From sequence record LR756504.1: DNA of 64,000 nt; one strand, given 5' to 3'. The translations under genes and the position numbers were made by a program. The notes under the pieces were generated by a model that was not told where the DNA came from, did no database searches, and saw nothing but the letters and a program-made list of their open reading frames with translations. This document shows, one piece after another, positions 41,996 through 55,284 of the stretch; position 1 is the first letter of the stretch, and each line of letters opens with the position of its first letter.

Positions 41996-42709
41996 CTAAT
42001 CTTTAGCTCTCATAAAATATGGTAGTGACATATTAGTTTGAATTTTTCTACTATCTTTCTTTACAAATTCTATTAAATGTCTTTTAACTGTGATGATAGC
42101 AAAATAATCACAATTACTCAACTCATACAATAAATTTTTAGAATATCCATAACTATAACCAATACCGCTCTTTTTAGAAAAGAAATATTCTTTTTTAGAT
42201 ATTACAAAATCTATCATATGATTATATGATTCCCTCTCATGTTTACCAAGTTTAGGTGTAATGTTAAATATCTCTTTAGGTGGCTCTAAATTATCTTTAA
42301 TTGGACGATTATATTTTTTTACAATTTCTACAATTTCTCCATTAGGTGTTATAATACCTGAATATTCATTATTTAAAATTGTATCAATAATAGTACCCCT
42401 AATATCATATGAATATTCAGATGTTTTAGTCTTCTTACTAATGAGACTATATCCGTTATTTATTGCCTCGGTGATAATATTATTAAATTGTTCTTTCTCA
42501 GAACTATTAGAAACGATACTTTTTATAGCAGACATTGCACTATCCAGTAGAGTCATATCACTTTTTGAAGCAGGTTTAACTACACCATCTTTTCTTAATG
42601 GTATAATATCAGTTTTTAAAAGTTTTCTTTCAACTTTTAAAATCCTACCCATCTTACCACTTTGATTCAACCTACTTAAAAACTTTCCATATTTTTGGGT
42701 ATCTGACAT
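41996..42709 (-). CDS. Repeat-domain family protein (2 repeats)
   Basis: Shared N-terminus YGKFLSRLNQSGKMGRILK; Y(S/F)(G/A)II...EI/EF...R-I repeats. Confidence 0.8.
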   Translation of the reverse strand: MSDTQKYGKFLSRLNQSGKMGRILKVERKLLKTDIIPLRKDGVVKPASKSDMTLLDSAMSAIKSIVSNSSEKEQFNNIITEAINNGYSLISKKTKTSEYSYDIRGTIIDTILNNEYSGIITPNGEIVEIVKKYNRPIKDNLEPPKEIFNITPKLGKHERESYNHMIDFVISKKEYFFSKKSGIGYSYGYSKNLLYELSNCDYFAIITVKRHLIEFVKKDSRKIQTNMSLPYFMRAKD

Positions 42710-42710
42710 A

Positions 42711-44384
42711 TTAAATAAATTTTGGTAGTTCCATATCGGGCGTAATTTCTCTTACACCTGTTTTTATATACTCATAAATTTTTTCTCTATCATTATCAAT
42801 TATACCAATATAATCAGCTTTTCCAAAATCACTAATATTCATATGACATCCACCAATATATGTTGTAGATTTAGTTCTTGTAAGAAATTTATGAGACGCA
42901 TTTTTTAATACATCTTGAAATGCAAATACATATTCAAATTCCATTTTATAATTCCTCAATTTTGAATTAGGAAATATTGAACTTGTTATACTTCTTACTT
43001 CTAATAAAGAATATTCAACAAGAGTATTACCAACTCTGAATGCAAAATATTTTGAACCTTTAATTCTATAATTCCACATTACATTAGTATCACCAGTTAA
43101 TATATCATTTTTATATTTTATAATTGATAAATTTCTTTTAATAATTTCTTTAAAATCAATTTCAAGCTGAGTAATTTCTTTATTAATATTTAAATTAGGT
43201 AATGGAATACCATCCATTTCAATTTCCCTTTCTCCTATTTTTACAAATTCTGTAATTCTACCACAATCACTAATGTGAGCAAAATAATCAACACCATTTA
43301 ATATTGTTTGCGCTTTAGTACCGTTTTCGTAATAATTAGAAGTGAATGAACCATTCTTCCATCTATATATAAACCACCCCTGTTTTTCTACGGCATCATT
43401 AATAGATTTTAAAAAACTAATTGTCTCTTCAGTAAATCCCATATTAATAAGAATTGGATTTTGAACTATATCATCTATCAAATCTTTTGTACCAAGATTG
43501 TAATATTCAACTAATTTATTTTTAGAACGAAATCCAACATAATTACCATCAAGTAGACTACTTAATAAATTTACACTATCAATATACCCAAACACATCTA
43601 TAAACTCACCATCTTTATATTTAATTAAATTAAAATCACTAGTTCTTCTAACACATTCATTAAATTTTGTATAAAGCCTACTTTCAACTGTCTCTTTTTT
43701 TGTAGGTGGTATAATAGGAATTGGTGGTGGTATAATAACTGTGTGTATAGTTAAAGATTCATCTGATACTACATCATTATTATACAAAATTGGCGTTGGA
43801 GTTTTTTCCGAAATTTTTCTAATACCTATCTTTCTAAATTCTGCAATATTTCCACTTTTAGTAAATATTCCTAAATAATCGGAATTGAGTGCGTATGTTA
43901 TCATACCATCATCAGTTCCTTTATATTCATTTTTATACTTACTGTCATTTCTTATGACTATTTGATATTTATGTGCTGCTTTAATAGCATCATTGTAATT
44001 TTTCTTATCAGTATCATAATTTTCAACATTATCAACAAAACAAGATAGCATATCAATATCTTTACCATAAGTATATTCTCTTGAACCTAAATTTTGATAT
44101 TCATGTATATTTCCTATGTTAGATAAAATACCGATATATTCATTATTTAAAAATGTAGATAGCAATGTTGTATCACCTATACCAATATTATAGTTATCGT
44201 TCTTATCTAATCGTGTGATTATACATGTTCCAATTTTTTTAGCAGTACATATTGCATGATTTAATTTAAAAATCTCAATATCAGTACCAGGTTCAAAATC
44301 AGGCATAGTCTTAATAATCTTTCCCATTCTTCCTGAATGATTAAGATTCCCAAGAAACTGCCCATATGTTCTTACGATTGTCAT
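42711..44384 (-). CDS. Repeat-domain family protein (about 6 repeats)
   Basis: N-terminus YGQFLGNLNHSGRMGKIIK; six Y-G/A-I...E(F/Y)..(G).R.I units. Confidence 0.8.
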   Translation of the reverse strand: MTIVRTYGQFLGNLNHSGRMGKIIKTMPDFEPGTDIEIFKLNHAICTAKKIGTCIITRLDKNDNYNIGIGDTTLLSTFLNNEYIGILSNIGNIHEYQNLGSREYTYGKDIDMLSCFVDNVENYDTDKKNYNDAIKAAHKYQIVIRNDSKYKNEYKGTDDGMITYALNSDYLGIFTKSGNIAEFRKIGIRKISEKTPTPILYNNDVVSDESLTIHTVIIPPPIPIIPPTKKETVESRLYTKFNECVRRTSDFNLIKYKDGEFIDVFGYIDSVNLLSSLLDGNYVGFRSKNKLVEYYNLGTKDLIDDIVQNPILINMGFTEETISFLKSINDAVEKQGWFIYRWKNGSFTSNYYENGTKAQTILNGVDYFAHISDCGRITEFVKIGEREIEMDGIPLPNLNINKEITQLEIDFKEIIKRNLSIIKYKNDILTGDTNVMWNYRIKGSKYFAFRVGNTLVEYSLLEVRSITSSIFPNSKLRNYKMEFEYVFAFQDVLKNASHKFLTRTKSTTYIGGCHMNISDFGKADYIGIIDNDREKIYEYIKTGVREITPDMELPKFI

Positions 44385-44393
44385 AAAATATCT

Positions 44394-45638
44394 TTATTTG
44401 CGGTAAATTACAGGTTCTTCTTCAGCAGTTTTTCTATCTCTTTTATCAACTAAGATAAATTCATATAGTTTATTAGTAGTACTTCTTACGGCAAAATACT
44501 CAAATTCCTCTTTAATTAATTTTTCTATAAATTCTGTTTGTCCTTGAGTTAGTTTATCACCTCTAAATCCATCCTTATCTCTAACAAAAATAATGGATTC
44601 GTCAAGAACTTTATTGAAATCTTCAGTTTCAAATTTCACACCTTCCCAAACACCTTGATGTTTTAATTTTTCGGTAAGAACATCATTAACTTCCATATTA
44701 TGTGCAATAGGACGAATATCAACTCTCCAATATTCGTATATAGTATCTTTCGTCACGATAGCATTATATTCACTACTCATGAAACTATCAATCATTTTAG
44801 TCGGAAATATCTTATTGGTAAATATTGTATTACTTCTAAAATTACATTCATAAGCTTTACTATCGCTCTTTCTTTTAATATAACCAAAACCATTATCATC
44901 AATACTCATTAAAGCTTTTGAAAATGTATTTTTTGATTTAATATTTTTCGGTTCTGAAATAATTTTTGTTTCTATTTTTAGAAATTCACCAATACTTGTT
45001 CCGCTATTTGAATAATCATTACCACCATAAATTAAAGGTGCTTCCGAATCATCAGAAAGTTTTCTATATCCAAATCTTACATATTCCAGTAAATTAGGCT
45101 TCTTTGAGAAAAATCCAAAGTATTTATATTTAATAATTTTCTTTAGAACATCAAAACCAGTTTTTCCTTCACTATTATATCCATTTTTATCTTTAATAAT
45201 GATTTGATAAGTTGCTGCTGCTGTTAATGCTCTATTAAAATCTTTATACTCTTTTTTAACATCATGCTCAATGGGTTCTATAGAAGATACTTTTTCAAGA
45301 GGTTGACACTCAACATCCTTAACATATGCTCTTGATGATATTTTATTAAATTCAGAAATGAATATATCACCACTTTTAGTTGTAAGAACACCAACATAAT
45401 CATTATTTAAGAATGGTTCTAAATCATTGTATGTATCTGATAAATAACCTGTATCTTTATTCTTCCTCGTAATTACACAATGTCCATATTTTTTAGCATT
45501 AACTAAAGCAATGTTAAATTTAACCATTTCTGGATCAGCATCAGGAGAAAAATCAGGAATGGTTTTAATAACCTTCCCCGTTTTTCCAGCGTGGTTTAAC
45601 CCACCAAGAAATATACCCCAACTCTTTACGTTTGACAT
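44394..45638 (-). CDS. Repeat-domain family protein (about 4 repeats)
   Basis: N-terminus WGIFLGGLNHAGKTGKVIK; TATCTTTG promoter at 45656-45663. Confidence 0.8.
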   Translation of the reverse strand: MSNVKSWGIFLGGLNHAGKTGKVIKTIPDFSPDADPEMVKFNIALVNAKKYGHCVITRKNKDTGYLSDTYNDLEPFLNNDYVGVLTTKSGDIFISEFNKISSRAYVKDVECQPLEKVSSIEPIEHDVKKEYKDFNRALTAAATYQIIIKDKNGYNSEGKTGFDVLKKIIKYKYFGFFSKKPNLLEYVRFGYRKLSDDSEAPLIYGGNDYSNSGTSIGEFLKIETKIISEPKNIKSKNTFSKALMSIDDNGFGYIKRKSDSKAYECNFRSNTIFTNKIFPTKMIDSFMSSEYNAIVTKDTIYEYWRVDIRPIAHNMEVNDVLTEKLKHQGVWEGVKFETEDFNKVLDESIIFVRDKDGFRGDKLTQGQTEFIEKLIKEEFEYFAVRSTTNKLYEFILVDKRDRKTAEEEPVIYRK

Positions 45639-45672: not shown

Positions 45673-45703
45673 TTTGAAATAACGAAATAATTCTGTAAAT
45701 TTG
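45673..45703 (+). promoter_or_regulatory. Bacteroidota-type sigma70 promoter
   Basis: TTTG-19 nt-TAAATTTG-tat-ATG. Confidence 0.75.
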
Positions 45704-45706
45704 TAT

Positions 45707-46867
45707 ATGAATATTTTAAAAGACATAAATAACATTGATGGAATTAAAGCTTTAACAGCTAAAGGTGGTGAAATTTTTCTTGTTGGTGGTATAGTTAGAG
45801 ATTCATTTTTGAATAAAGAGTCTAAAGATATAGATTTAATAGTAAGATTATTAGAAATAGATGTTATTGAAAAAATACTATTGCCTCATGGTTTTGTTAA
45901 AAAAGATGTTGGTAAATCTTTTAGTGTAATCAAATTTATTCCCAAAGGATGGACTAAAGAACCAATTGACATTGCTTTACCTAGAACAGAAAAAAAGATT
46001 GATATTGGACATAAAGGCTTTAAAATTGACGCAAATCCATTTCTTGAAATCGAAGAGGATTTAATTCGCCGTGACATAACGATAAACTCTATTGCTATAT
46101 CATTAAAAGATGGAAGAGTGATTGATCCGTTTAATGGTATTTCTGATATTAAAAATAAACTCATTAAAGCCACATCTAATCAATCTTTTATAGAGGATCC
46201 ATTAAGAATTCTCAGAGTAATTCAATTTGCTTCTCGCTTTGATTTTGATATTGAAGATGAAACATTTGATCTTATTTTAAAAAATGTTCAATCTTTAGAT
46301 GAAATAAGCGGAGAAAGAATTACTACCGAACTTGATAAAATTTTCACAAAAGGAGACATTCAAAAAGGATTTAAACTTTTAAAAGACTCTAAAGTTCTTA
46401 AACAAATAACAGGCTCAGAACCTATTGACTTTCAATTAGATTCAAAAATAACACGCTCAGAATTCTTCTTCTTATTATTTCAAGGTTCTCATTCTCCCGA
46501 ATCAATATTTGAAAAAAGATTGAATGGTGATGTTGATACCATAAAAGGAATCAAAGCTTTGAATATTTTCAGAAATAAATTTACAACAGATTTATCAGAA
46601 ATTGAAAAAAGATTTCTGATGGTAGAACTTATTACTAAATCTAACGATGTTTTAAATTTTTCAATTTTAAAAGGATTGGAGACTGAAATAACACAATTTA
46701 GAAATAAAGAATTTCCATCTAAAATTACAGATTTAGCTATTAATGGTGATATTTTAATGAACAAAGGATTAAAAGGTAAAGAAATTGGTGATAAATTAAA
46801 ACTTTTATTATTCGAAGTTCTACAAGGAAAAAAGAAAAACATTATAGAAGATTTATTAAATGATTGA
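45707..46867 (+). CDS. cca: Class II tRNA nucleotidyltransferase (CCA-adding/poly(A) polymerase family)
   Basis: FLVGGIVRD...KDIDL, EEDLIRRDITINSIA, EDPLRILRVIQFASRF; no HD domain seen. Confidence 0.9.
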   Translation: MNILKDINNIDGIKALTAKGGEIFLVGGIVRDSFLNKESKDIDLIVRLLEIDVIEKILLPHGFVKKDVGKSFSVIKFIPKGWTKEPIDIALPRTEKKIDIGHKGFKIDANPFLEIEEDLIRRDITINSIAISLKDGRVIDPFNGISDIKNKLIKATSNQSFIEDPLRILRVIQFASRFDFDIEDETFDLILKNVQSLDEISGERITTELDKIFTKGDIQKGFKLLKDSKVLKQITGSEPIDFQLDSKITRSEFFFLLFQGSHSPESIFEKRLNGDVDTIKGIKALNIFRNKFTTDLSEIEKRFLMVELITKSNDVLNFSILKGLETEITQFRNKEFPSKITDLAINGDILMNKGLKGKEIGDKLKLLLFEVLQGKKKNIIEDLLND

Positions 46868-47072
46868 AGAAATTGTTTACACTATAATATTCTTCCTATC
46901 TTATGTTATACCTATTTCTATCTCTGTTATATTAGAGAAATTGGCAAACAAAAAAGATATGGATGTTTTGTGGTTTATATTGCTAATTTATAACTTTTTC
47001 GGAATTATAATAATATGGATCATAAATTGGAATATACTTAAATATATGGTAATAAGAATATTCGTATTTTAA
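46860..47072 (+). CDS. Small 2-TM membrane protein
   Basis: Two hydrophobic segments. Confidence 0.65.
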   Translation: MIEEIVYTIIFFLSYVIPISISVILEKLANKKDMDVLWFILLIYNFFGIIIIWIINWNILKYMVIRIFVF

Positions 47073-47183
47073 TACTTAAAACAAATATTAAATAATGCAT
47101 ATAATGTAAAATATACCATGTTCAAATAAATTGTTATGGTTTATTGGTGGTGATACCCACAATAAAAAACTATAGCGCATTAA

Positions 47184-47480
47184 ATGGCAGATCAAAATGA
47201 AATTATAAATAATATAAGACGTAAACGAAGATTTAATGCGAGAATAAGTCGAATAATTGCAGATGTTTTAAGTGTTAATGAAATTGATTTTAACGCTGAC
47301 ACTGTTATAAAAGGATTTCATAAAGCTGACGAAATAGATATTTTAGAAATTATAATTGGAATAGAAACTGAATTTGATATTCAAATACCCGATAATTTAT
47401 TTTCAGAATTTAAAACTGTTGGTGATTTCTATGATTATGTTAGAAATGCCACTGGTGGAAAAAATAGAAGTTTAAATTAG
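47184..47480 (+). CDS. Acyl-carrier-protein-fold protein, Ser-to-Glu at the phosphopantetheine site
   Basis: ADEIDILEIIIGIETEFDIQIPD...KTVGDFYDYV aligns with AcpP [23 protein letters not shown]...TTVQAAIDYI. Confidence 0.85.
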   Translation: MADQNEIINNIRRKRRFNARISRIIADVLSVNEIDFNADTVIKGFHKADEIDILEIIIGIETEFDIQIPDNLFSEFKTVGDFYDYVRNATGGKNRSLN

Positions 47481-47753
47481 ATGGATATAATATCTTTAAG
47501 AAATAAAAGAAGCTCTGAAAAGATAGTGAAAACTTCTATTTCGGAAGTATTAAGAATAAATATAGATAAATTAGATACATTAAATAAAAATTCAATACTA
47601 TATGAAGAATTAAATATAGACGAACTCGACTTAATAGAAATAATAATGTTAATTGAAAGAAGAATGAATGTTATTTTTAAAGATGATGAAGTCGAAAAAA
47701 TTTTAACAGTAGGTGATATTTATAACTATGTTCAACAAAAAATCAAACGTTAA
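47481..47753 (+). CDS. Second ACP-fold protein, Ser-to-Glu at the phosphopantetheine site
   Basis: ELNIDELDLIEIIMLIERRMNVIFKDDEVEKILTVGDIYNYV. Confidence 0.85.
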   Translation: MDIISLRNKRSSEKIVKTSISEVLRINIDKLDTLNKNSILYEELNIDELDLIEIIMLIERRMNVIFKDDEVEKILTVGDIYNYVQQKIKR

Positions 47754-48304
47754 TGAATCAAAATTTCAAAAAAGATTTCAGAAAAAAACAACAAGAAAAT
47801 AAACACAGAATTAATTCATATATTACTACACATGAAATAAGATTAGTTGGTGATAATATTGAACAAGGAGTTTATTCTAATAGAGAAGCTTTAAGATTAG
47901 CTCAAGAATTACATTTAGATTTAGTTGAAATATCACCTAATGCAAACCCTCCCGTTTGTAGAATAGTAGATTATCAGAAATTTTTATATGAACAGAAAAA
48001 AAGAGAAAAAGAAAATGTTCAAAAACAAAAGCTGATTAATAAAGAGCTTAAAGAAATTCGTTTTACTGCTAATACAGATGAAAATGATGTTGAAGTAAAA
48101 AAGAAGAAAATAATTGAATTCTTGGAAAAAGGACACAAAGTTAAAACTCTTGTTGTTTTTAAAGGTAGAGAAATACAACATAAAGAAAGGGGTGAATATC
48201 TTCTTTTAAGTTTAGCTAACGATATTCAAGAAGTTGGAAAAATTGATAGTTTGCCTAAATTAGAAGGTAAAAATATGCATATGATGATAAGTCCAAAAAA
48301 GTAA
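47753..48304 (+). CDS. infC: Translation initiation factor IF3
   Basis: HRIN...EIRLVG, LDLVEISPNANPPVCRIVDYQKFLYEQKK, KEIRF, FKGRE, PKLEGK; no thrS/rpmI/rplT neighbours. Confidence 0.97.
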   Translation: MNQNFKKDFRKKQQENKHRINSYITTHEIRLVGDNIEQGVYSNREALRLAQELHLDLVEISPNANPPVCRIVDYQKFLYEQKKREKENVQKQKLINKELKEIRFTANTDENDVEVKKKKIIEFLEKGHKVKTLVVFKGREIQHKERGEYLLLSLANDIQEVGKIDSLPKLEGKNMHMMISPKK

Positions 48305-48359: not shown

Positions 48360-48701
48360 ATGAGTAAATATTTATCATATTCCGAAAATTTTAAACAATT
48401 AGTTAAAGGTGATTTTATAGTACTTGAATGTATGGATGAAATTCCAGATAAAGCATTTCCCATACAAAAAAGTACTATTCAAAAATGGACAGTATCACAA
48501 TCCGATGCTAAAGGGTTTACCATGTCCCGTAAAATTAAAGGACTTCCAAAGCAAACAATCACGATGTATAATATATTCATTAAAGATAATATATTCATTT
48601 CTTTCCAATCAATGTTTATGCCTTATAATTGTAATTTTAAGGTGTCTATTCAAAAAAAGAGCGATAAAGTTAATACATTAAAAACATTATTCAATAGATA
48701 A
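48360..48701 (+). CDS. Hypothetical early protein
   Basis: 113-aa ORF behind a host-type promoter. Confidence 0.75.
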   Translation: MSKYLSYSENFKQLVKGDFIVLECMDEIPDKAFPIQKSTIQKWTVSQSDAKGFTMSRKIKGLPKQTITMYNIFIKDNIFISFQSMFMPYNCNFKVSIQKKSDKVNTLKTLFNR

Positions 48702-48769: not shown

Positions 48770-50137
48770 ATGTCAAATATAATGTCTTTTGATGAACATA
48801 ATTCAATCAATGAAAATAGAGGTGTAGTACCTGGTATGGACTTTTTCGTTGAATTAGTTAAAAAAGAATTATTTCGTGTAAAGAAGGAAATAATCACTAT
48901 CAGGGATCAATATGCAAATAAAAGATTCAAAAAACCAGAAGATAGATTCAATGCTTGTATAAAAGCATTAGAAGAAAAAGTTATTAACGTACCCATAGTT
49001 ATTGACATTGAAAATCCACCCGCAGAATTCCCTTTACATAAATTAACTATAGTTTTTGATGAAGTAAGAGGTAGTGCCAAGGCTACATACAAAAAAGAAA
49101 GAACACACTTTGATGATGATGGTAGAATTATACAAGCTACTATAGGTTTAAAACTTGAAATTAAATTAGACAGTTTTAAAAATCCAATCGAAGTTAGAGA
49201 TTTAGCTTACTCAAGAGTTCCACACGAATTAACACATGTGTACCAACACTATAAGTGGAAGGATAAAGTTGACTATGAAAAAAATAGACAAGTTGCCAAA
49301 AAAGAATTTGGTAGAGTTGCTATTTGGAATAAACAAGCCGCCGATAAAAAAGGAGTAACTAAATCAGAGAAGAATGATAGTGAAGCAAGACAATTTTTAA
49401 CTAACTATATTTCTAAAGCTATTTACTATTTCAGTGAAAAAGAAATTGGTGCTAAAGTTACCCAGACTTACTATGAACTGCTAAAAGAAAAAGCAATTAA
49501 ACCTTCGAAAGATCCAAAAACAGGCTCTATTAATCAAAAAGATTTAATGGACAAACTTAAAAAGACTACTCACTGGGAGTCTTTACAAGCATATATCTTT
49601 AATTTGGATACTCTGTATGATTTAATTAAACACGGACATACTGTTGTTATGATTGAAGATGGTAAACGAGTTAAAATGAAATTCACCGATGATGACTTAA
49701 AAGGAATTCTTCAAGATGTTGATAGAGCTATTGATGCACAAGAAGAGAAAGAAGAAAAAGCTATCAATAAGAGAAAAGTTGATGTTCCTAATCGTCCCAT
49801 AATTCCTAAAGTTGATAAGAGAGAAGAAATTTTCAGTAAATATAATTTAAATACCGAAAATCCAAGAAGTATATTCTTAAAACTTCTTAAATATTTCGAT
49901 GAACAGATTGAATCATTTAGAAGAAGGATACTACGACTATCAGTTGAACTACCAATAGAGTATACAGATACTAAGAAAGTTGTTAAAAAGGGTATTAAAA
50001 AAACAGATAAGCCTAATGAAGAAGACGAAGAACAAAAAGCAAAAGAAGAAGAAATAATCGAAGCTGAAATTGAACAACAAGAACCCGTTGAACCAATAGA
50101 AACAGAGGATGAAAATAAAGAAGATAAAGAAGAATAA
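48770..50137 (+). CDS. Putative zincin metalloprotease with CTS-like N-terminus
   Basis: VPHELTHVYQH (HExxH); N-terminus MSNIMSFDEHNSINE; acidic tail. Confidence 0.6.
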   Translation: MSNIMSFDEHNSINENRGVVPGMDFFVELVKKELFRVKKEIITIRDQYANKRFKKPEDRFNACIKALEEKVINVPIVIDIENPPAEFPLHKLTIVFDEVRGSAKATYKKERTHFDDDGRIIQATIGLKLEIKLDSFKNPIEVRDLAYSRVPHELTHVYQHYKWKDKVDYEKNRQVAKKEFGRVAIWNKQAADKKGVTKSEKNDSEARQFLTNYISKAIYYFSEKEIGAKVTQTYYELLKEKAIKPSKDPKTGSINQKDLMDKLKKTTHWESLQAYIFNLDTLYDLIKHGHTVVMIEDGKRVKMKFTDDDLKGILQDVDRAIDAQEEKEEKAINKRKVDVPNRPIIPKVDKREEIFSKYNLNTENPRSIFLKLLKYFDEQIESFRRRILRLSVELPIEYTDTKKVVKKGIKKTDKPNEEDEEQKAKEEEIIEAEIEQQEPVEPIETEDENKEDKEE

Positions 50138-50165
50138 AAAAGGAGCTAATTAGCTCCTTTTCTTT
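50136..50165. terminator. Bidirectional terminator (edges approximate)
   Basis: aaggagctaa|ttagctcctt between convergent genes. Confidence 0.85.
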
Positions 50166-50166
50166 T

Positions 50167-52068
50167 TTAATCATAATCATGATAATCTTCTTCTGGTATT
50201 TTAGCAGAATTCTCTATACCTATCGTTTTTAACTCTACTTCATAACCCCATAGATATTCTAAATATTTTAAAGTTTTATTTTTCATATCTTCATGTAATG
50301 GTAAATTATTATGGGATTCATAAACCAATTTAAGTTTTCTATCACCTAATAAATCTACCGAGTCAACTTGTATATCAGGAAAATGTTGACTCCAATTATA
50401 TGTAGATGCTAATTTTTCTCTAATTTCTCTATAACCTCTATCATTATGAATCCTCTTAACCATATAATTTTTTTCCTCAGAATCATCAAGCAAATAAAAC
50501 ATTTTGAAATCTCTTATTACTTTGGGTGATAAGAATTGTAATATAAATGTTTCATCTTTATAATTTTTTATTATATCATGGAATACATCTAACCAATCTT
50601 TACCAACTATATCAGGAAACCATTCTCTGTCTTCATCAGTAGGCTCTTGACATATTCTTTTAATATCCATTAACATAGCAAACCCAAGTGCATAAGGATT
50701 GAAACCTGAATAGTATGGTGAATTAAATTCTGGTTGGAATACTACAGAAGTATGTGATGCTAAGAATTCTAACATAAATCCATCATCTACTAATCCTTCA
50801 TCAAACATTTTATTTAAAATATGATAGTGTACAAATGTTGCACAATTATGATTTATAAATGGACCAGATTGATATTTATGTGAATTAGTTACACTAAAAT
50901 CATATGTAGTACCATAATCTTCTTCAATAGAAATTATTTCATCTTCACATTTCTCACCATCTATAATAACATCAACAATATTACTAATTACCAAATTTAA
51001 CAATTCAACCCAATTAGAATTTATTAAAATTTTATGATTTTCACCACCATGTAAAGTATATCCATTCTTGGTTTTTATTTTAATTCTTTTTTTATTTTCA
51101 TGTTTAAACCAATCATATATAACTTCCCATTTTTCACCATCCCATACTTTACCACTATATTTATTGTCTACAATGTATTTAATATCTATTAGTCCATCTT
51201 CAGTTGATATTAAAGAACCTTCTACTAAACAGCCTTCATTTAAAACTTTTGTAGAAATTTGGGGCATAAAATATTGAGACAACTTTCTTGTTATTCTTAT
51301 CAATTCTCTTTTCCATGTTTCTAATCTCGGTGCGTATTTTTCTACAAAGTATAGAATATTTTCTTCTCTTTGCACAGGGAATTTATATTCTTTAATGGTA
51401 TCTTTCTTTTTAATAGGCGCAGTCATTTCCATTAAGTAATCATAAAGCTTATCATTTTCTTCACTTACTTTATTATTAAATTCTGCTTTACTAGTTTTTG
51501 ATTTATATGTTCTTTTATATTTATCTACACCCCAATATTGTAAAGCATGACAAGCATCTAAAACTACTTCAACTTCTTTTTCTCCATATTTTTGTTCACA
51601 TTCTTTTATGTAATTCTTAGCAAAACTTAAATAATCTACAATAGAAGAAGCATCTGTCCACTCTTTAAACATATAATTATTTTTAAATAAATGGTTATGT
51701 CCCATAGCAGCGTGAGCAATTACTAATGTAGTCATACACGCAGTATTATCTTCCATATTAAAAGATATACATGGGTTTGTATTTAGAACTATTTCGTAAG
51801 CAAGTCCCATAGTACCTTTCTTATACTTATTCATATTAATAAGATAATCTTTGCCGAATTTCCAGTGATTATACATAATAGGTAATCCATGTGATGCGTA
51901 AGCATCAATCATTTGGTCAGCAGAAATAATCTCGATTTGATTCGGATAAATATCTAACTTCAAATAATCTTTACCAATTCTTTCGATTTCGTTATAGACA
52001 TCATCTATGAATTCGAATGTCCATACATTGTCTGTAGGAATGATATTACTTTTTTTCTTCTTGTTCAT
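50167..52068 (-). CDS. spoVR: SpoVR/YcgB-family protein containing an intein
   Basis: YPNQIEIIS, GLAYEIVLN, LVIAHAAMGHNHLFKNN, TKVLNEG|CATFVH, NPYALGF, YKDETFILQFLSP. Confidence 0.93.
   Translation of the reverse strand: MNKKKKSNIIPTDNVWTFEFIDDVYNEIERIGKDYLKLDIYPNQIEIISADQMIDAYASHGLPIMYNHWKFGKDYLINMNKYKKGTMGLAYEIVLNTNPCISFNMEDNTACMTTLVIAHAAMGHNHLFKNNYMFKEWTDASSIVDYLSFAKNYIKECEQKYGEKEVEVVLDACHALQYWGVDKYKRTYKSKTSKAEFNNKVSEENDKLYDYLMEMTAPIKKKDTIKEYKFPVQREENILYFVEKYAPRLETWKRELIRITRKLSQYFMPQISTKVLNEGCLVEGSLISTEDGLIDIKYIVDNKYSGKVWDGEKWEVIYDWFKHENKKRIKIKTKNGYTLHGGENHKILINSNWVELLNLVISNIVDVIIDGEKCEDEIISIEEDYGTTYDFSVTNSHKYQSGPFINHNCATFVHYHILNKMFDEGLVDDGFMLEFLASHTSVVFQPEFNSPYYSGFNPYALGFAMLMDIKRICQEPTDEDREWFPDIVGKDWLDVFHDIIKNYKDETFILQFLSPKVIRDFKMFYLLDDSEEKNYMVKRIHNDRGYREIREKLASTYNWSQHFPDIQVDSVDLLGDRKLKLVYESHNNLPLHEDMKNKTLKYLEYLWGYEVELKTIGIENSAKIPEEDYHDYD
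50845..51231 (-). mobile_element. 129-aa mini-intein (no homing endonuclease)
   Basis: Block A CLVEGSLI, block B GENH, block F TYDFSV, block G INHN/C. Confidence 0.92.
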
Positions 52069-52345
52069 ATACAATTTCTTTTATTTTCTTTTTAGTTACT
52101 TTATGTGGATTGCTTTTATTTCTATCAGATATAATAAGATTAGATAAATATATGAAGTCTATTATTGAGACTCCCCAACATAAATAAATGAACCAAATAG
52201 GAATTCCATGTTCAACTTTCGCAAATGTCATTATTGATATGAAAGGTGCTAATGACATAAATATGTATATACATATAGTTATAATACCATATAACAATTG
52301 AAATGGTTTTACTATAAGCATATTGTATAATTTTTTAAACATCAT
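52046..52345 (-). CDS. Small 2-TM membrane protein
   Basis: Hydrophobic segments; ATGA-coupled to the methyltransferase. Confidence 0.7.
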   Translation of the reverse strand: MMFKKLYNMLIVKPFQLLYGIITICIYIFMSLAPFISIMTFAKVEHGIPIWFIYLCWGVSIIDFIYLSNLIISDRNKSNPHKVTKKKIKEIVYEQEEKK

Positions 52346-53967: not shown

Positions 53968-55284
53968 TTAGTTTGTAATTGGTACTTTTTTCTCAAATAA
54001 TTTTTTAAACACTGTCCATATTTCATTTATTTCTTTTATGGATTTCATTGCTAAATTTGGATTCTCTGTGGCGACTGGTCTATATGCTTTCCATAAATCT
54101 GATTTAATTTTAGTAAAACCATTATTAGGAATTTCTATATATGCCATATATTGTAATAAAGGCATCATAGTATTTAATAATTCCGCTGATGCTTTAGCAT
54201 CAGATTTATCCCACACATCACCATCAGATGCTTGACAAACATAAACGTTCCATTCAGATGAGAATCTTTCTTGCATTATTTTTATAGCTAATTCTAATGC
54301 TGGTTTAATTTTAGTACCGCCATTTTCTTTAGAATTAAAGAATGCTTCTTCATTTACTTCTTTAGCTTCTGTATGATGTTGAATGAATACTATTTCAACA
54401 TTAGGATATTGTTTTGATAAAAATAAATACAATAATGTAAAAAATCTTCTAGCAATATCTTTTTCTTTTTTACCCATTGAACCAGAAATATCCATAATAC
54501 AAAACATTACTGCTTGTGTGTTAGGTACAGGCTTAGGTTCAAAATTCTTATATGATAAATCTTTATCATCTAAATATGGAATTGATTTTAACTGCTTTTC
54601 AGTATTTTCAATCTCTAACATTAAATAATTTATTCTATCTGAATCAGTATTACTTTTTAATAATTCTGATTCCAATTCCTGTTTTAATTTTTTTAATTTC
54701 TCTTCAATAGAAACTTGCATCCCTATTCTTCTAGCTAAAGAATTCTTATAAGATTTAACCATATCCATAGAAGAGAATGGTCCATCAGTTTTAAAACCGT
54801 GTCTCTTATATTTTTTAGCATCTTCACTCATTAAATACTTTTTTGCTAAATCTGGAAGTTCTAAATCATCAAAAAAGTAATTTAAAAATTCATCCTTCGA
54901 AATAGAAATTATAAATTCATCTTCACCCACACTTGGGTCATTAGAACCCTTTCCTTTACCACTTCCTTTTCCTCCTGATGAGGGTGGTTTAGGTATTTGA
55001 TCACCTTCTACGAATTTTGATGTTTTAACTTCAGCTGGATTACCTGGAAGAATTCTATGCTTAGTTCCTTTAGAATTATCATAAACAAATGTAGGTTCTT
55101 CTATACCTTTAATTGGTACTTTAATAGAACCATTATTATTAATATCTTTAATTGATTGATTATTTAATACATTAGGAATGTTATTCTTAATTTGTTCTTC
55201 AACACGTTTTAAGAATTTATTTCTATTTGTTATTGATTTCCCCTTGCTATTAAGCCTTCTGTCGATTATAAAACTTCTAGACAT
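53968..55284 (-). CDS. yeaH: YeaH/YhbH (DUF444) vWA-domain protein
   Basis: IDRRLNSKGKS, ISKDEFLNYFFDDLELPDL, MFCIMDISGSM, QHHTEAKEV, QASDGD. Confidence 0.93.
   Translation of the reverse strand: MSRSFIIDRRLNSKGKSITNRNKFLKRVEEQIKNNIPNVLNNQSIKDINNNGSIKVPIKGIEEPTFVYDNSKGTKHRILPGNPAEVKTSKFVEGDQIPKPPSSGGKGSGKGKGSNDPSVGEDEFIISISKDEFLNYFFDDLELPDLAKKYLMSEDAKKYKRHGFKTDGPFSSMDMVKSYKNSLARRIGMQVSIEEKLKKLKQELESELLKSNTDSDRINYLMLEIENTEKQLKSIPYLDDKDLSYKNFEPKPVPNTQAVMFCIMDISGSMGKKEKDIARRFFTLLYLFLSKQYPNVEIVFIQHHTEAKEVNEEAFFNSKENGGTKIKPALELAIKIMQERFSSEWNVYVCQASDGDVWDKSDAKASAELLNTMMPLLQYMAYIEIPNNGFTKIKSDLWKAYRPVATENPNLAMKSIKEINEIWTVFKKLFEKKVPITN

Follow-up and report, generated by a model that had tools for sequence, protein, structure and literature searches.

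Huge phages of the Mahaphage type encode a natural pseudo-carrier, an acyl carrier protein fold without the phosphopantetheine site, next to infC

Carrier proteins are defined by their prosthetic group, and a gene for an acyl carrier protein (ACP) that lacks the residue to which this group is attached raises the question of what its product does. Two such genes, ACP1 and ACP2, precede infC, the gene of translation initiation factor 3 (IF3), in the 64,000-nucleotide stretch of phage DNA analyzed here, which we call the window. ACP1 (98 residues, 47184..47480, + strand) is followed by its paralog ACP2 (90 residues, 47481..47753, +) and by infC (183 residues, 47753..48304, +). The ACP1 and ACP2 genes meet as TAG-ATG with zero spacing, and the TAA stop codon of ACP2 overlaps the ATG of infC in the sequence TAATG; coordinates and junctions are as an earlier, preliminary description of the locus had given them. 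The window is identical to positions 62001-126000 of LR756504.1, a 636,363-bp unannotated 'uncultured phage' genome from freshwater, and has a G+C content of 26.8% with zero N. LR756504.1, a member of the Mahaphage clade with Bacteroidetes as predicted hosts, is one of the four genomes that are largest among those curated by Al-Shayeb et al. 2020 (PMC7162821). The same study notes IF3 and CCA-adding enzymes in huge phages, and acyl carrier proteins are absent from its main text (PMC7162821). We find that the locus encodes a natural 'pseudo-carrier' ACP in a conserved ACP1-IF3-HExxH block of Mahaphage-type huge phages, and we propose putative functions for it on the basis of sequence comparisons and predicted structures.

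ACP1 and ACP2 are predicted to share the ACP fold. The PP-binding family of Pfam (PF00550) matches ACP1 with 30.9 bits and ACP2 with 26.9 bits, both above the cut-off of 20.8, and PHROG 5934 'acyl carrier protein' matches them with E-values of 7e-13 and 5e-11. When compared by phmmer with ACPs of type II fatty acid synthesis (FAS-II) in the PDB (B. subtilis 1HY8, Aquifex 2EHS), they score E-values of about 8e-10 (ACP1) and 3e-10 (ACP2). The AlphaFold2 models of ACP1 and ACP2 (predicted local distance difference test, pLDDT, 87.4 and 86.7; predicted template modeling score, pTM, 0.76 and 0.77) contain helices I-IV in the order of ACPs. A Foldseek comparison of the ACP1 model with the PDB retrieves FAS-II ACPs with target-normalized template modeling scores (TM) of 0.85-0.90 and a root-mean-square deviation of ~1.2 Å. 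The ACP resemblance of both proteins is well beyond chance, and the fold named in the preliminary description agrees with the Pfam, PHROG and PDB matches and with the predicted models.

The two proteins resemble the bacterial FAS-II carrier AcpP in the four-helix fold, in 27-35% sequence identity, in the motifs D-x-[LI]-D-x-x-E of helix II and TVGD...Y of helix IV, and in the acids at positions 35, 38, 41, 47 and 56. They differ from it in having E, D or A in place of the serine that binds phosphopantetheine (Ppant), a basic N-terminal helix, and bulky residues at positions 59 and 68. Furthermore, they are far less acidic, and no phosphopantetheinyl transferase (PPTase) or second ACP was detected in their genome. 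The AcpP equivalog TIGR00517 is the nearest family in NCBIfam, but its cut-off of 70.45 bits is reached by neither protein (51.6 bits for ACP1, 40.2 bits for ACP2). These sub-threshold scores identify them as diverged derivatives of FAS-II carriers rather than as peptidyl or aryl carrier protein types (PCP/ArCP). ACP1 and ACP2 appear to be descendants of a FAS-II carrier whose function as a carrier they have abandoned. Both possess the basic N-terminal extension reported earlier; it is 15-20 residues long, is modeled by AlphaFold2 as a lengthened helix I, and contains K14 and R15, which are invariant over both paralogs and all orthologs. Since the extension with its invariant K-R pair is common to the paralogs, it suggests that the duplication took place after the loss of the serine and the gain of the extension. 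ACP1 ends in a conserved C-terminal tail, TGGKNRSLN.

The alignments made with HMMER are gap-free through helix II and place a glutamate exactly on the Ppant serine of solved ACPs, as had been claimed: ADSLD corresponds to ADEID in ACP1 (Glu51) and to IDELD in ACP2 (Glu48). Both glutamates are encoded by GAA, so recoding is not involved at the Ppant site. The Ser-to-Glu change that the paralogs were said to share stands insofar as serine occupies the site in 0 orthologs of ACP1 or ACP2, and it has to be amended as to the replacing residue. In five of the six ACP1 lineages this residue is E, and in the sixth (P0013) it is A; the ACP2 of the window likewise has E, whereas its three orthologs (P0005, P0006, P0018) have D. 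The loss of the attachment site is fixed in the clade, and an acidic residue at this position appears to be preferred, not obligatory. The alignment of ACP1 and ACP2 contains no alternative conserved serine at the start of helix II. Judged by these residues, phosphopantetheinylation at the canonical site is impossible for ACP1 and ACP2. A whole-genome scan of 1,837 open reading frames (ORFs) of >=45 amino acids detected no further ACP-like gene in LR756504.1, and a phmmer search with AcpS and Sfp at E<=10 found no PPTase among these ORFs, within the limited sensitivity of single-sequence searches. Curated families for serine-less ACPs were found neither in NCBIfam, where AcpP-type matches are sub-threshold only, nor in PADLOC, which gave zero matches. 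Because the serine is missing and the TIGR00517 cut-off is failed, the annotation 'acyl carrier protein' is unsuitable, and the accurate label is 'ACP-like protein lacking the phosphopantetheine site'.

ACP1 and ACP2 share one frame in the window, and we considered a fusion of the two by recoding of the TAG codon between them. This was rejected, as TAG ends 40 of 446 long frames, like TGA (54). The relatives L007 and L010 also speak against a fusion, since in them the two genes lie in different frames and ACP1 stops with TAA or TGA. ARAGORN detected no tRNA with a plain CUA anticodon in LR756504.1. Besides ~34 ordinary tRNAs, the program predicts several odd ones in this genome, at about 281045-281120 (positions 9045-9120 of L023, - strand) and at other sites; three have two-base anticodons, and one has the four-base anticodon 'tcta'.

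Relatives of the locus were found by word-indexed and exhaustive HMMER searches and contig look-ups, and comprise five lineages besides the window. The order CCA-adding enzyme, small ORF, ACP1, ACP2, infC is present in the window, in lineage 2 (L005/L006; P0002, P0005), and in lineage 4 (L010; P0008, P0018). Lineage 3 (L007; P0003, P0006) contains ACP1, ACP2 and infC. Lineage 5 (L115/L116; P0013) has the CCA-adding enzyme, the small ORF, ACP1 and infC without ACP2, and lineage 6 (L117; P0014) has ACP1 and infC without ACP2 and without an adjacent CCA-adding enzyme. ACP1 is thus located directly upstream of infC, immediately or via ACP2, in 6/6 lineages, and ACP2 is present in 4/6. At the junctions, neighboring genes overlap by up to 17 nt or lie up to 26 nt apart. 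The pairing of ACP1 with infC persists at 55-60% ACP1 identity, where synonymous sites are saturated, and it persists without the CCA-adding enzyme (L117) or without ACP2 (L115, L117). ACP1 (98) and ACP2 (93) form separate clades within one loose cluster of a tree that comprises 113 sequences and is poorly resolved.

The linkage of ACP genes to infC, proposed earlier as a feature to look for among phages, holds throughout this clade and does not extend beyond it. Seven other phage records (LR756501, LR756500, LR756511, MT837394, Atu_ph07, Phosso and Serratia BF) carry infC without a nearby ACP, and a general ACP-infC linkage in phages was rejected. Of 50,697 phage records searched by tblastn with ACP1 and ACP2, the source genome alone gave a match. 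The link is confined to the LR756504.1-type clade.

The ratio of non-synonymous to synonymous substitution rates (dN/dS) is 0.08-0.23 for ACP1, 0.16-0.45 for ACP2 and 0.04-0.09 for IF3, and ACP1 and ACP2 are under purifying selection. In AcpP, the acids D35, D38, E41, E47 and D56 serve for docking on AcpS and on Fab and Lpx enzymes. The equivalents of D35, D38, E47 and D56 are kept in 8/8 tabulated ACP1/ACP2 orthologs, and E41 is kept as E, with D in one; in the alignment of the two paralogs and their orthologs, these acids vary little or not at all. Bulky residues (F, Y, M, I or V) replace A59 and A68 in 8/8 of the tabulated orthologs. From structures of acyl-AcpP we take A59 and A68 to belong to the acyl cavity, and their replacement may indicate that the cavity is filled or lost, a point to which we attach low weight. 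Among 322 aligned ACP domains, small residues at the two positions occur in 67% and 37% of Ser-bearing domains vs 27% and 10% of E/D domains; because the profile used to rank the hits has E/D at the Ppant site, E/D frequencies are biased and the E/D share is overestimated, in this comparison as well.

Serine-less ACPs are not the rule among phages. Canonical phage ACPs belong to PHROG 5934 and 4154, and ACP1 and ACP2 match PHROG 5934. A scan of IMG/VR with a pattern tolerant of S, E or D confirmed 458 ACP relatives, of which the best 80 all have DS[LI]D. The expectation that the replacement of serine by glutamate would be conserved among phage ACP homologs is contradicted by these sequences, and phage ACPs as a whole retain the serine. 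In genomes that represent 185,579 species of bacteria and archaea, the motif D[ED][LI]D[IL][IL]EII yielded one confirmed relative, and this near-absence from cellular genomes indicates that ACP1 and ACP2 are phage-specific. Duplicated ACPs have been reported from a conserved 'host-interface island' of Flavobacterium jumbophages (2026, PMC13573597). That island resembles the present locus in containing duplicated genes of the ACP family in phages; it differs in that lipoproteins and a phosphohydrolase, not infC, accompany them, and the status of the serine is unstated (PMC13573597). A contact of a phage ACP with FabZ was predicted computationally (bioRxiv 10.64898/2026.03.01.708874), in a study that is not about serine-less proteins or infC. 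A literature search for serine-less phage ACPs and for an interaction of AcpP with IF3 retrieved no description of either.

Single ACP-like genes with Ser replaced by Glu are present in other viral contigs, and none of them is near infC. One is part of a sugar-modification cluster with cupin, glycosyltransferase, kinase and nucleotidyltransferase genes (L009, 4989-5246), another directly follows a 5'-3' exonuclease gene (L014/L015, 4995-5246), and a third lies amid unknown genes (L017, 4998-5291). Bacterial ACP-like proteins with lipoprotein-like or signal-peptide N-termini (P0071, P0077, P0079, P0097, P0119, P0122, P0007, P0012, P0016, P0020) contain one to three ACP-like domains, many with Asp or Glu for the Ppant serine. 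According to their sequences, these proteins may constitute a class of exported cofactor-free ACP-fold proteins. A metagenome-assembled genome of Caldilinea sp. (JAWOHO010000706.1; L114, 2758-3936) encodes a 392-residue protein composed of a TIR domain, a serine-less (DELD) ACP-like domain (LGMDELDLIEIIM) and two C2H2 zinc fingers. Its gene adjoins that of a caspase-like peptidase, in a context that resembles a defense island. A single origin of all serine-less ACP-like proteins is unsupported, as E/D forms are scattered among Ser-bearing ACPs in the 113-sequence tree; this scatter suggests repeated independent loss of the serine.

What could a carrier protein do that has nothing to carry? The ACP fold without its attachment site, the intact docking face, the purifying selection, the conserved operon and the lack of detected partner machinery together point to a cofactor-free docking protein. 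We propose that ACP1 and ACP2 are cofactor-free protein-binding modules, whose acidic helix II/III face would dock on basic patches of client proteins, and whose lengthened basic N-terminal helix would provide a second contact. They would occupy the ACP site of at least one host ACP-client protein without delivering an acyl group, and thus act as obligate 'apo' mimics. The pair would be made from one operon with IF3, the small membrane protein, the CCA-adding enzyme and the orphan HExxH protein during the takeover of the Bacteroidetes host, and is probably part of a host-takeover module. We give competitive docking on host ACP clients the largest share among the explanations, because the conserved residues are the docking acids of ACPs and because apo-ACP is a proven growth inhibitor. 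Nevertheless, it is a tentative choice that we stop short of calling probable, as regards both the host client as partner and the inhibitory nature of the binding.

The precedent comes from E. coli, in which an obligate apo-ACP (S39A) suppresses growth (PMC4736557) and apo-ACP inhibits the sn-glycerol-3-phosphate acyltransferase (PMC3896788). The apo-ACP of E. coli is likewise an unmodifiable ACP and offers a functional model for a decoy. It differs in being a laboratory artefact of the host ACP, whereas ACP1 and ACP2 are natural, conserved, phage-encoded, duplicated and linked to infC. The stringent response, listed earlier as a possible target, is unlikely to be one, because SpoT fails to bind apo-ACP (PMC3896788).

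Several observations weigh against competitive docking on host ACP clients. The preliminary description had envisaged a negatively charged apo decoy; the missing attachment site, the retained partner acids and the apo-ACP precedent agree with this, but the net charge is -4 for ACP1 and -2 for ACP2 vs -15 for AcpP of E. coli. The isoelectric points (pI) are 4.90 and 5.17 vs 4.05, and the N-terminal segments contribute charges of +5 in ACP1 and +3 in ACP2. ACP2 moreover has Arg-Arg at AcpP positions 48-49. Since Ala occurs in one ACP1 lineage and Asp in ACP2, 'selection for negative charge at the site' holds at most partly. The constant neighbors are translation genes and the orphan HExxH protein, not lipid genes. 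The search for ACP clients encoded by the phage was for PPTases only, with Fab, Lpx and Pls not searched. The occurrence of serine-less ACP-like proteins in unrelated contexts means that the serine-less state alone fixes no single function. Finally, a basic N-terminal helix is atypical of ACP decoys, and it might be a sign of binding to RNA or to the ribosome. The neighbors, the basic helix and the reduced acidity suit a partner encoded within the block at least as well.

The first such partner to consider is IF3 itself. The phage IF3 has both domains (IF3_N, PF05198, 98.7 bits; IF3_C, PF00707, 104.4 bits) joined by a basic linker, matches PHROG 9787 with an E-value of 1e-47, and has a net charge of +9 and a pI of 9.5. 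ACP1, together with ACP2 where present, might be a translation accessory that partners the phage IF3 or the host 30S subunit. Helix II would use its acidic face to bind the basic IF3, or else a protein of the ribosome, the basic helix would touch rRNA or tRNA, and initiation would be tuned to phage mRNAs. The position of ACP1 upstream of infC in all six lineages, even where the CCA-adding enzyme or ACP2 is missing, the tight junctions (-17 to +26 nt), the invariant K-R of the N-terminal helix in both paralogs, and the positive charge of IF3 speak for this explanation. However, a contact of a bacterial ACP with IF3 or the ribosome is not known and the literature search found none, other infC-carrying phages have no ACP near infC, and synteny in phages may reflect shared timing rather than physical contact. 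We regard the translation accessory, in outline and in detail, as possible, though on the doubtful side.

A parallel between ACPs and translation exists in mitochondria, and the preliminary description had referred to it. The MALSU1-L0R8F8-mtACP module resembles the proposed arrangement in that a protein of the ACP fold, the mitochondrial ACP (mtACP), is tied to the translation apparatus. In the mitoribosome, a LYR protein grips the acyl-Ppant arm of mtACP. The analogy fails on this point, since ACP1 and ACP2 are unable to make the arm that is needed there, and genes resembling LYR proteins or RsfS were not seen in the block. Bacteroidetes initiate translation without Shine-Dalgarno pairing. 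ACP1 could be an obligate cofactor-free partner of IF3 or the 30S subunit and could form, together with the HExxH protein, a three-part ACP1-IF3-HExxH module that reprograms or replaces Bacteroidetes initiation; we think this unlikely.

The HExxH protein is a second potential partner within the block. It is a clade-specific protein of ~430 residues (455 in the window, 48770..50137, +), encoded downstream of infC in 6/6 lineages and split into two ORFs in L007. The motif SRVPHELTHxYQHYKWK (HExxHxxxH) is invariant in its alignment, and the protein is a candidate metallohydrolase on the strength of this motif. Among 5.8 billion proteins it was found in members of this clade only, and searches of Pfam, PHROG, PADLOC and the PDB gave zero matches. 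ACP1 might dock on this protein, or else on the CCA-adding enzyme, and serve it as a subunit with a structural or an inhibitory role. The HExxH protein is tied to the ACP1-infC pair in all six lineages and is exclusive to the clade, and proteins of the ACP fold serve as structural subunits in other systems such as complex I and NFS1-ISD11, entries of which are among the PDB matches of our proteins. Known structural roles, however, normally use the acyl-Ppant arm, and the HExxH protein has no recognizable fold family. A role as an enzyme subunit is accordingly one on which we would place little expectation.

Huge phages carry many anti-defense genes, and ACP1 and ACP2 could conceivably bind or mislead a host immune protein that contains or recognizes an ACP-like module. 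The TIR fusion of Caldilinea, beside its caspase-like gene, shows a serine-less ACP-like domain in such a setting. It is one example and a distant one, PADLOC returned no match for ACP1 or ACP2, and no link to defense systems of Bacteroidetes was found, so that we hold a counter-defense decoy to be improbable. That the two proteins are decaying carrier relics, or carry the cofactor on another residue, is hardly credible: homology to ACP and nothing more speaks for it, whereas dN/dS stays well under 1, six lineages have intact frames, the loss of the serine is common to both paralogs, and the start of helix II offers no conserved alternative serine.

The remaining genes of the + strand block surround the ACP1-infC pair. 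The first is the CCA-adding tRNA nucleotidyltransferase (45701..46867, +; Pfam PolyA_pol and PolyA_pol_RNAbd, PHROG 2244). It is followed by a small hydrophobic 70-residue ORF (46860..47072, +), likely a two-helix membrane protein, which has no Pfam match, has phmmer orthologs in L005, L010 and L115/L116, and is kept between the CCA-adding enzyme and ACP1. Downstream of infC, a conserved 113-residue protein (48360..48701, +) has orthologs in four lineages (L005, L117, L007 and L010, the last possibly partial); family searches in Pfam, PHROG and PADLOC gave nothing significant. A bidirectional terminator-like hairpin (50138..50161, +), the sole such hairpin of the block, closes the + strand unit behind the HExxH gene.

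The 111-nt gap before ACP1 contains a promoter-like TTAAAA-18-TATAAT sequence (47076..47105, +). It is a consensus match only, and it is weak because the number of promoter-like sites in the region is not above shuffled expectation. The stretch TATAATGTAAAATATACC is common to the window and L005. Just 5' of ACP1 lies a GTGG...CCAC hairpin followed by AATAAAAAACTATA (47140-47175, +); its stem is maintained by compensating changes in L007 and L010, and it is deleted in L005. The window contains no second copy of this hairpin, and an Rfam scan of the leader and block gave nothing above noise, with no match for the hairpin.

Upstream of the block, three divergent genes (41996-45638, -) encode proteins of 237, 557 and 414 residues that have no Pfam match. 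They are conserved in L005 and L117; in L115/L116 their place is taken by a pair of genes of similar size (395 and 397 residues), again without a Pfam match. On the other side, a SpoVR homologue (50167-52074, -) is 635 residues long vs 504 in L005, and its Pfam match is split by an insert of ~130 residues. The insert begins with Cys, ends in HN-C and has a weak Intein_splicing match; it is probably a mini-intein. A DUF444/YeaH gene is located nearby (53968-55284, -), and the relative L115 has a PrkA gene, which suggests a phage-borne PrkA-YeaH-SpoVR set.

ACP-like domains with Asp or Glu for the Ppant serine recur independently: phages have them, as do secreted lipoproteins of bacteria and one protein with a TIR domain. 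This class is not described in the literature searched. An ACP that is conserved, duplicated and under selection without a prosthetic group would represent the ACP fold reused purely for docking, a 'pseudo-carrier'. Should IF3 or the ribosome be its partner, the pair would be a new part of the tools with which huge phages take over translation and would parallel mitochondrial ACP in an unexpected way, and ACP1 as a partner of IF3 or the 30S subunit would be the first ACP-fold protein recruited to translation initiation in bacteria or phages. With a host ACP client as the partner, the phages of this clade would possess a natural inhibitor of lipid or envelope synthesis that builds on the toxicity of apo-ACP.

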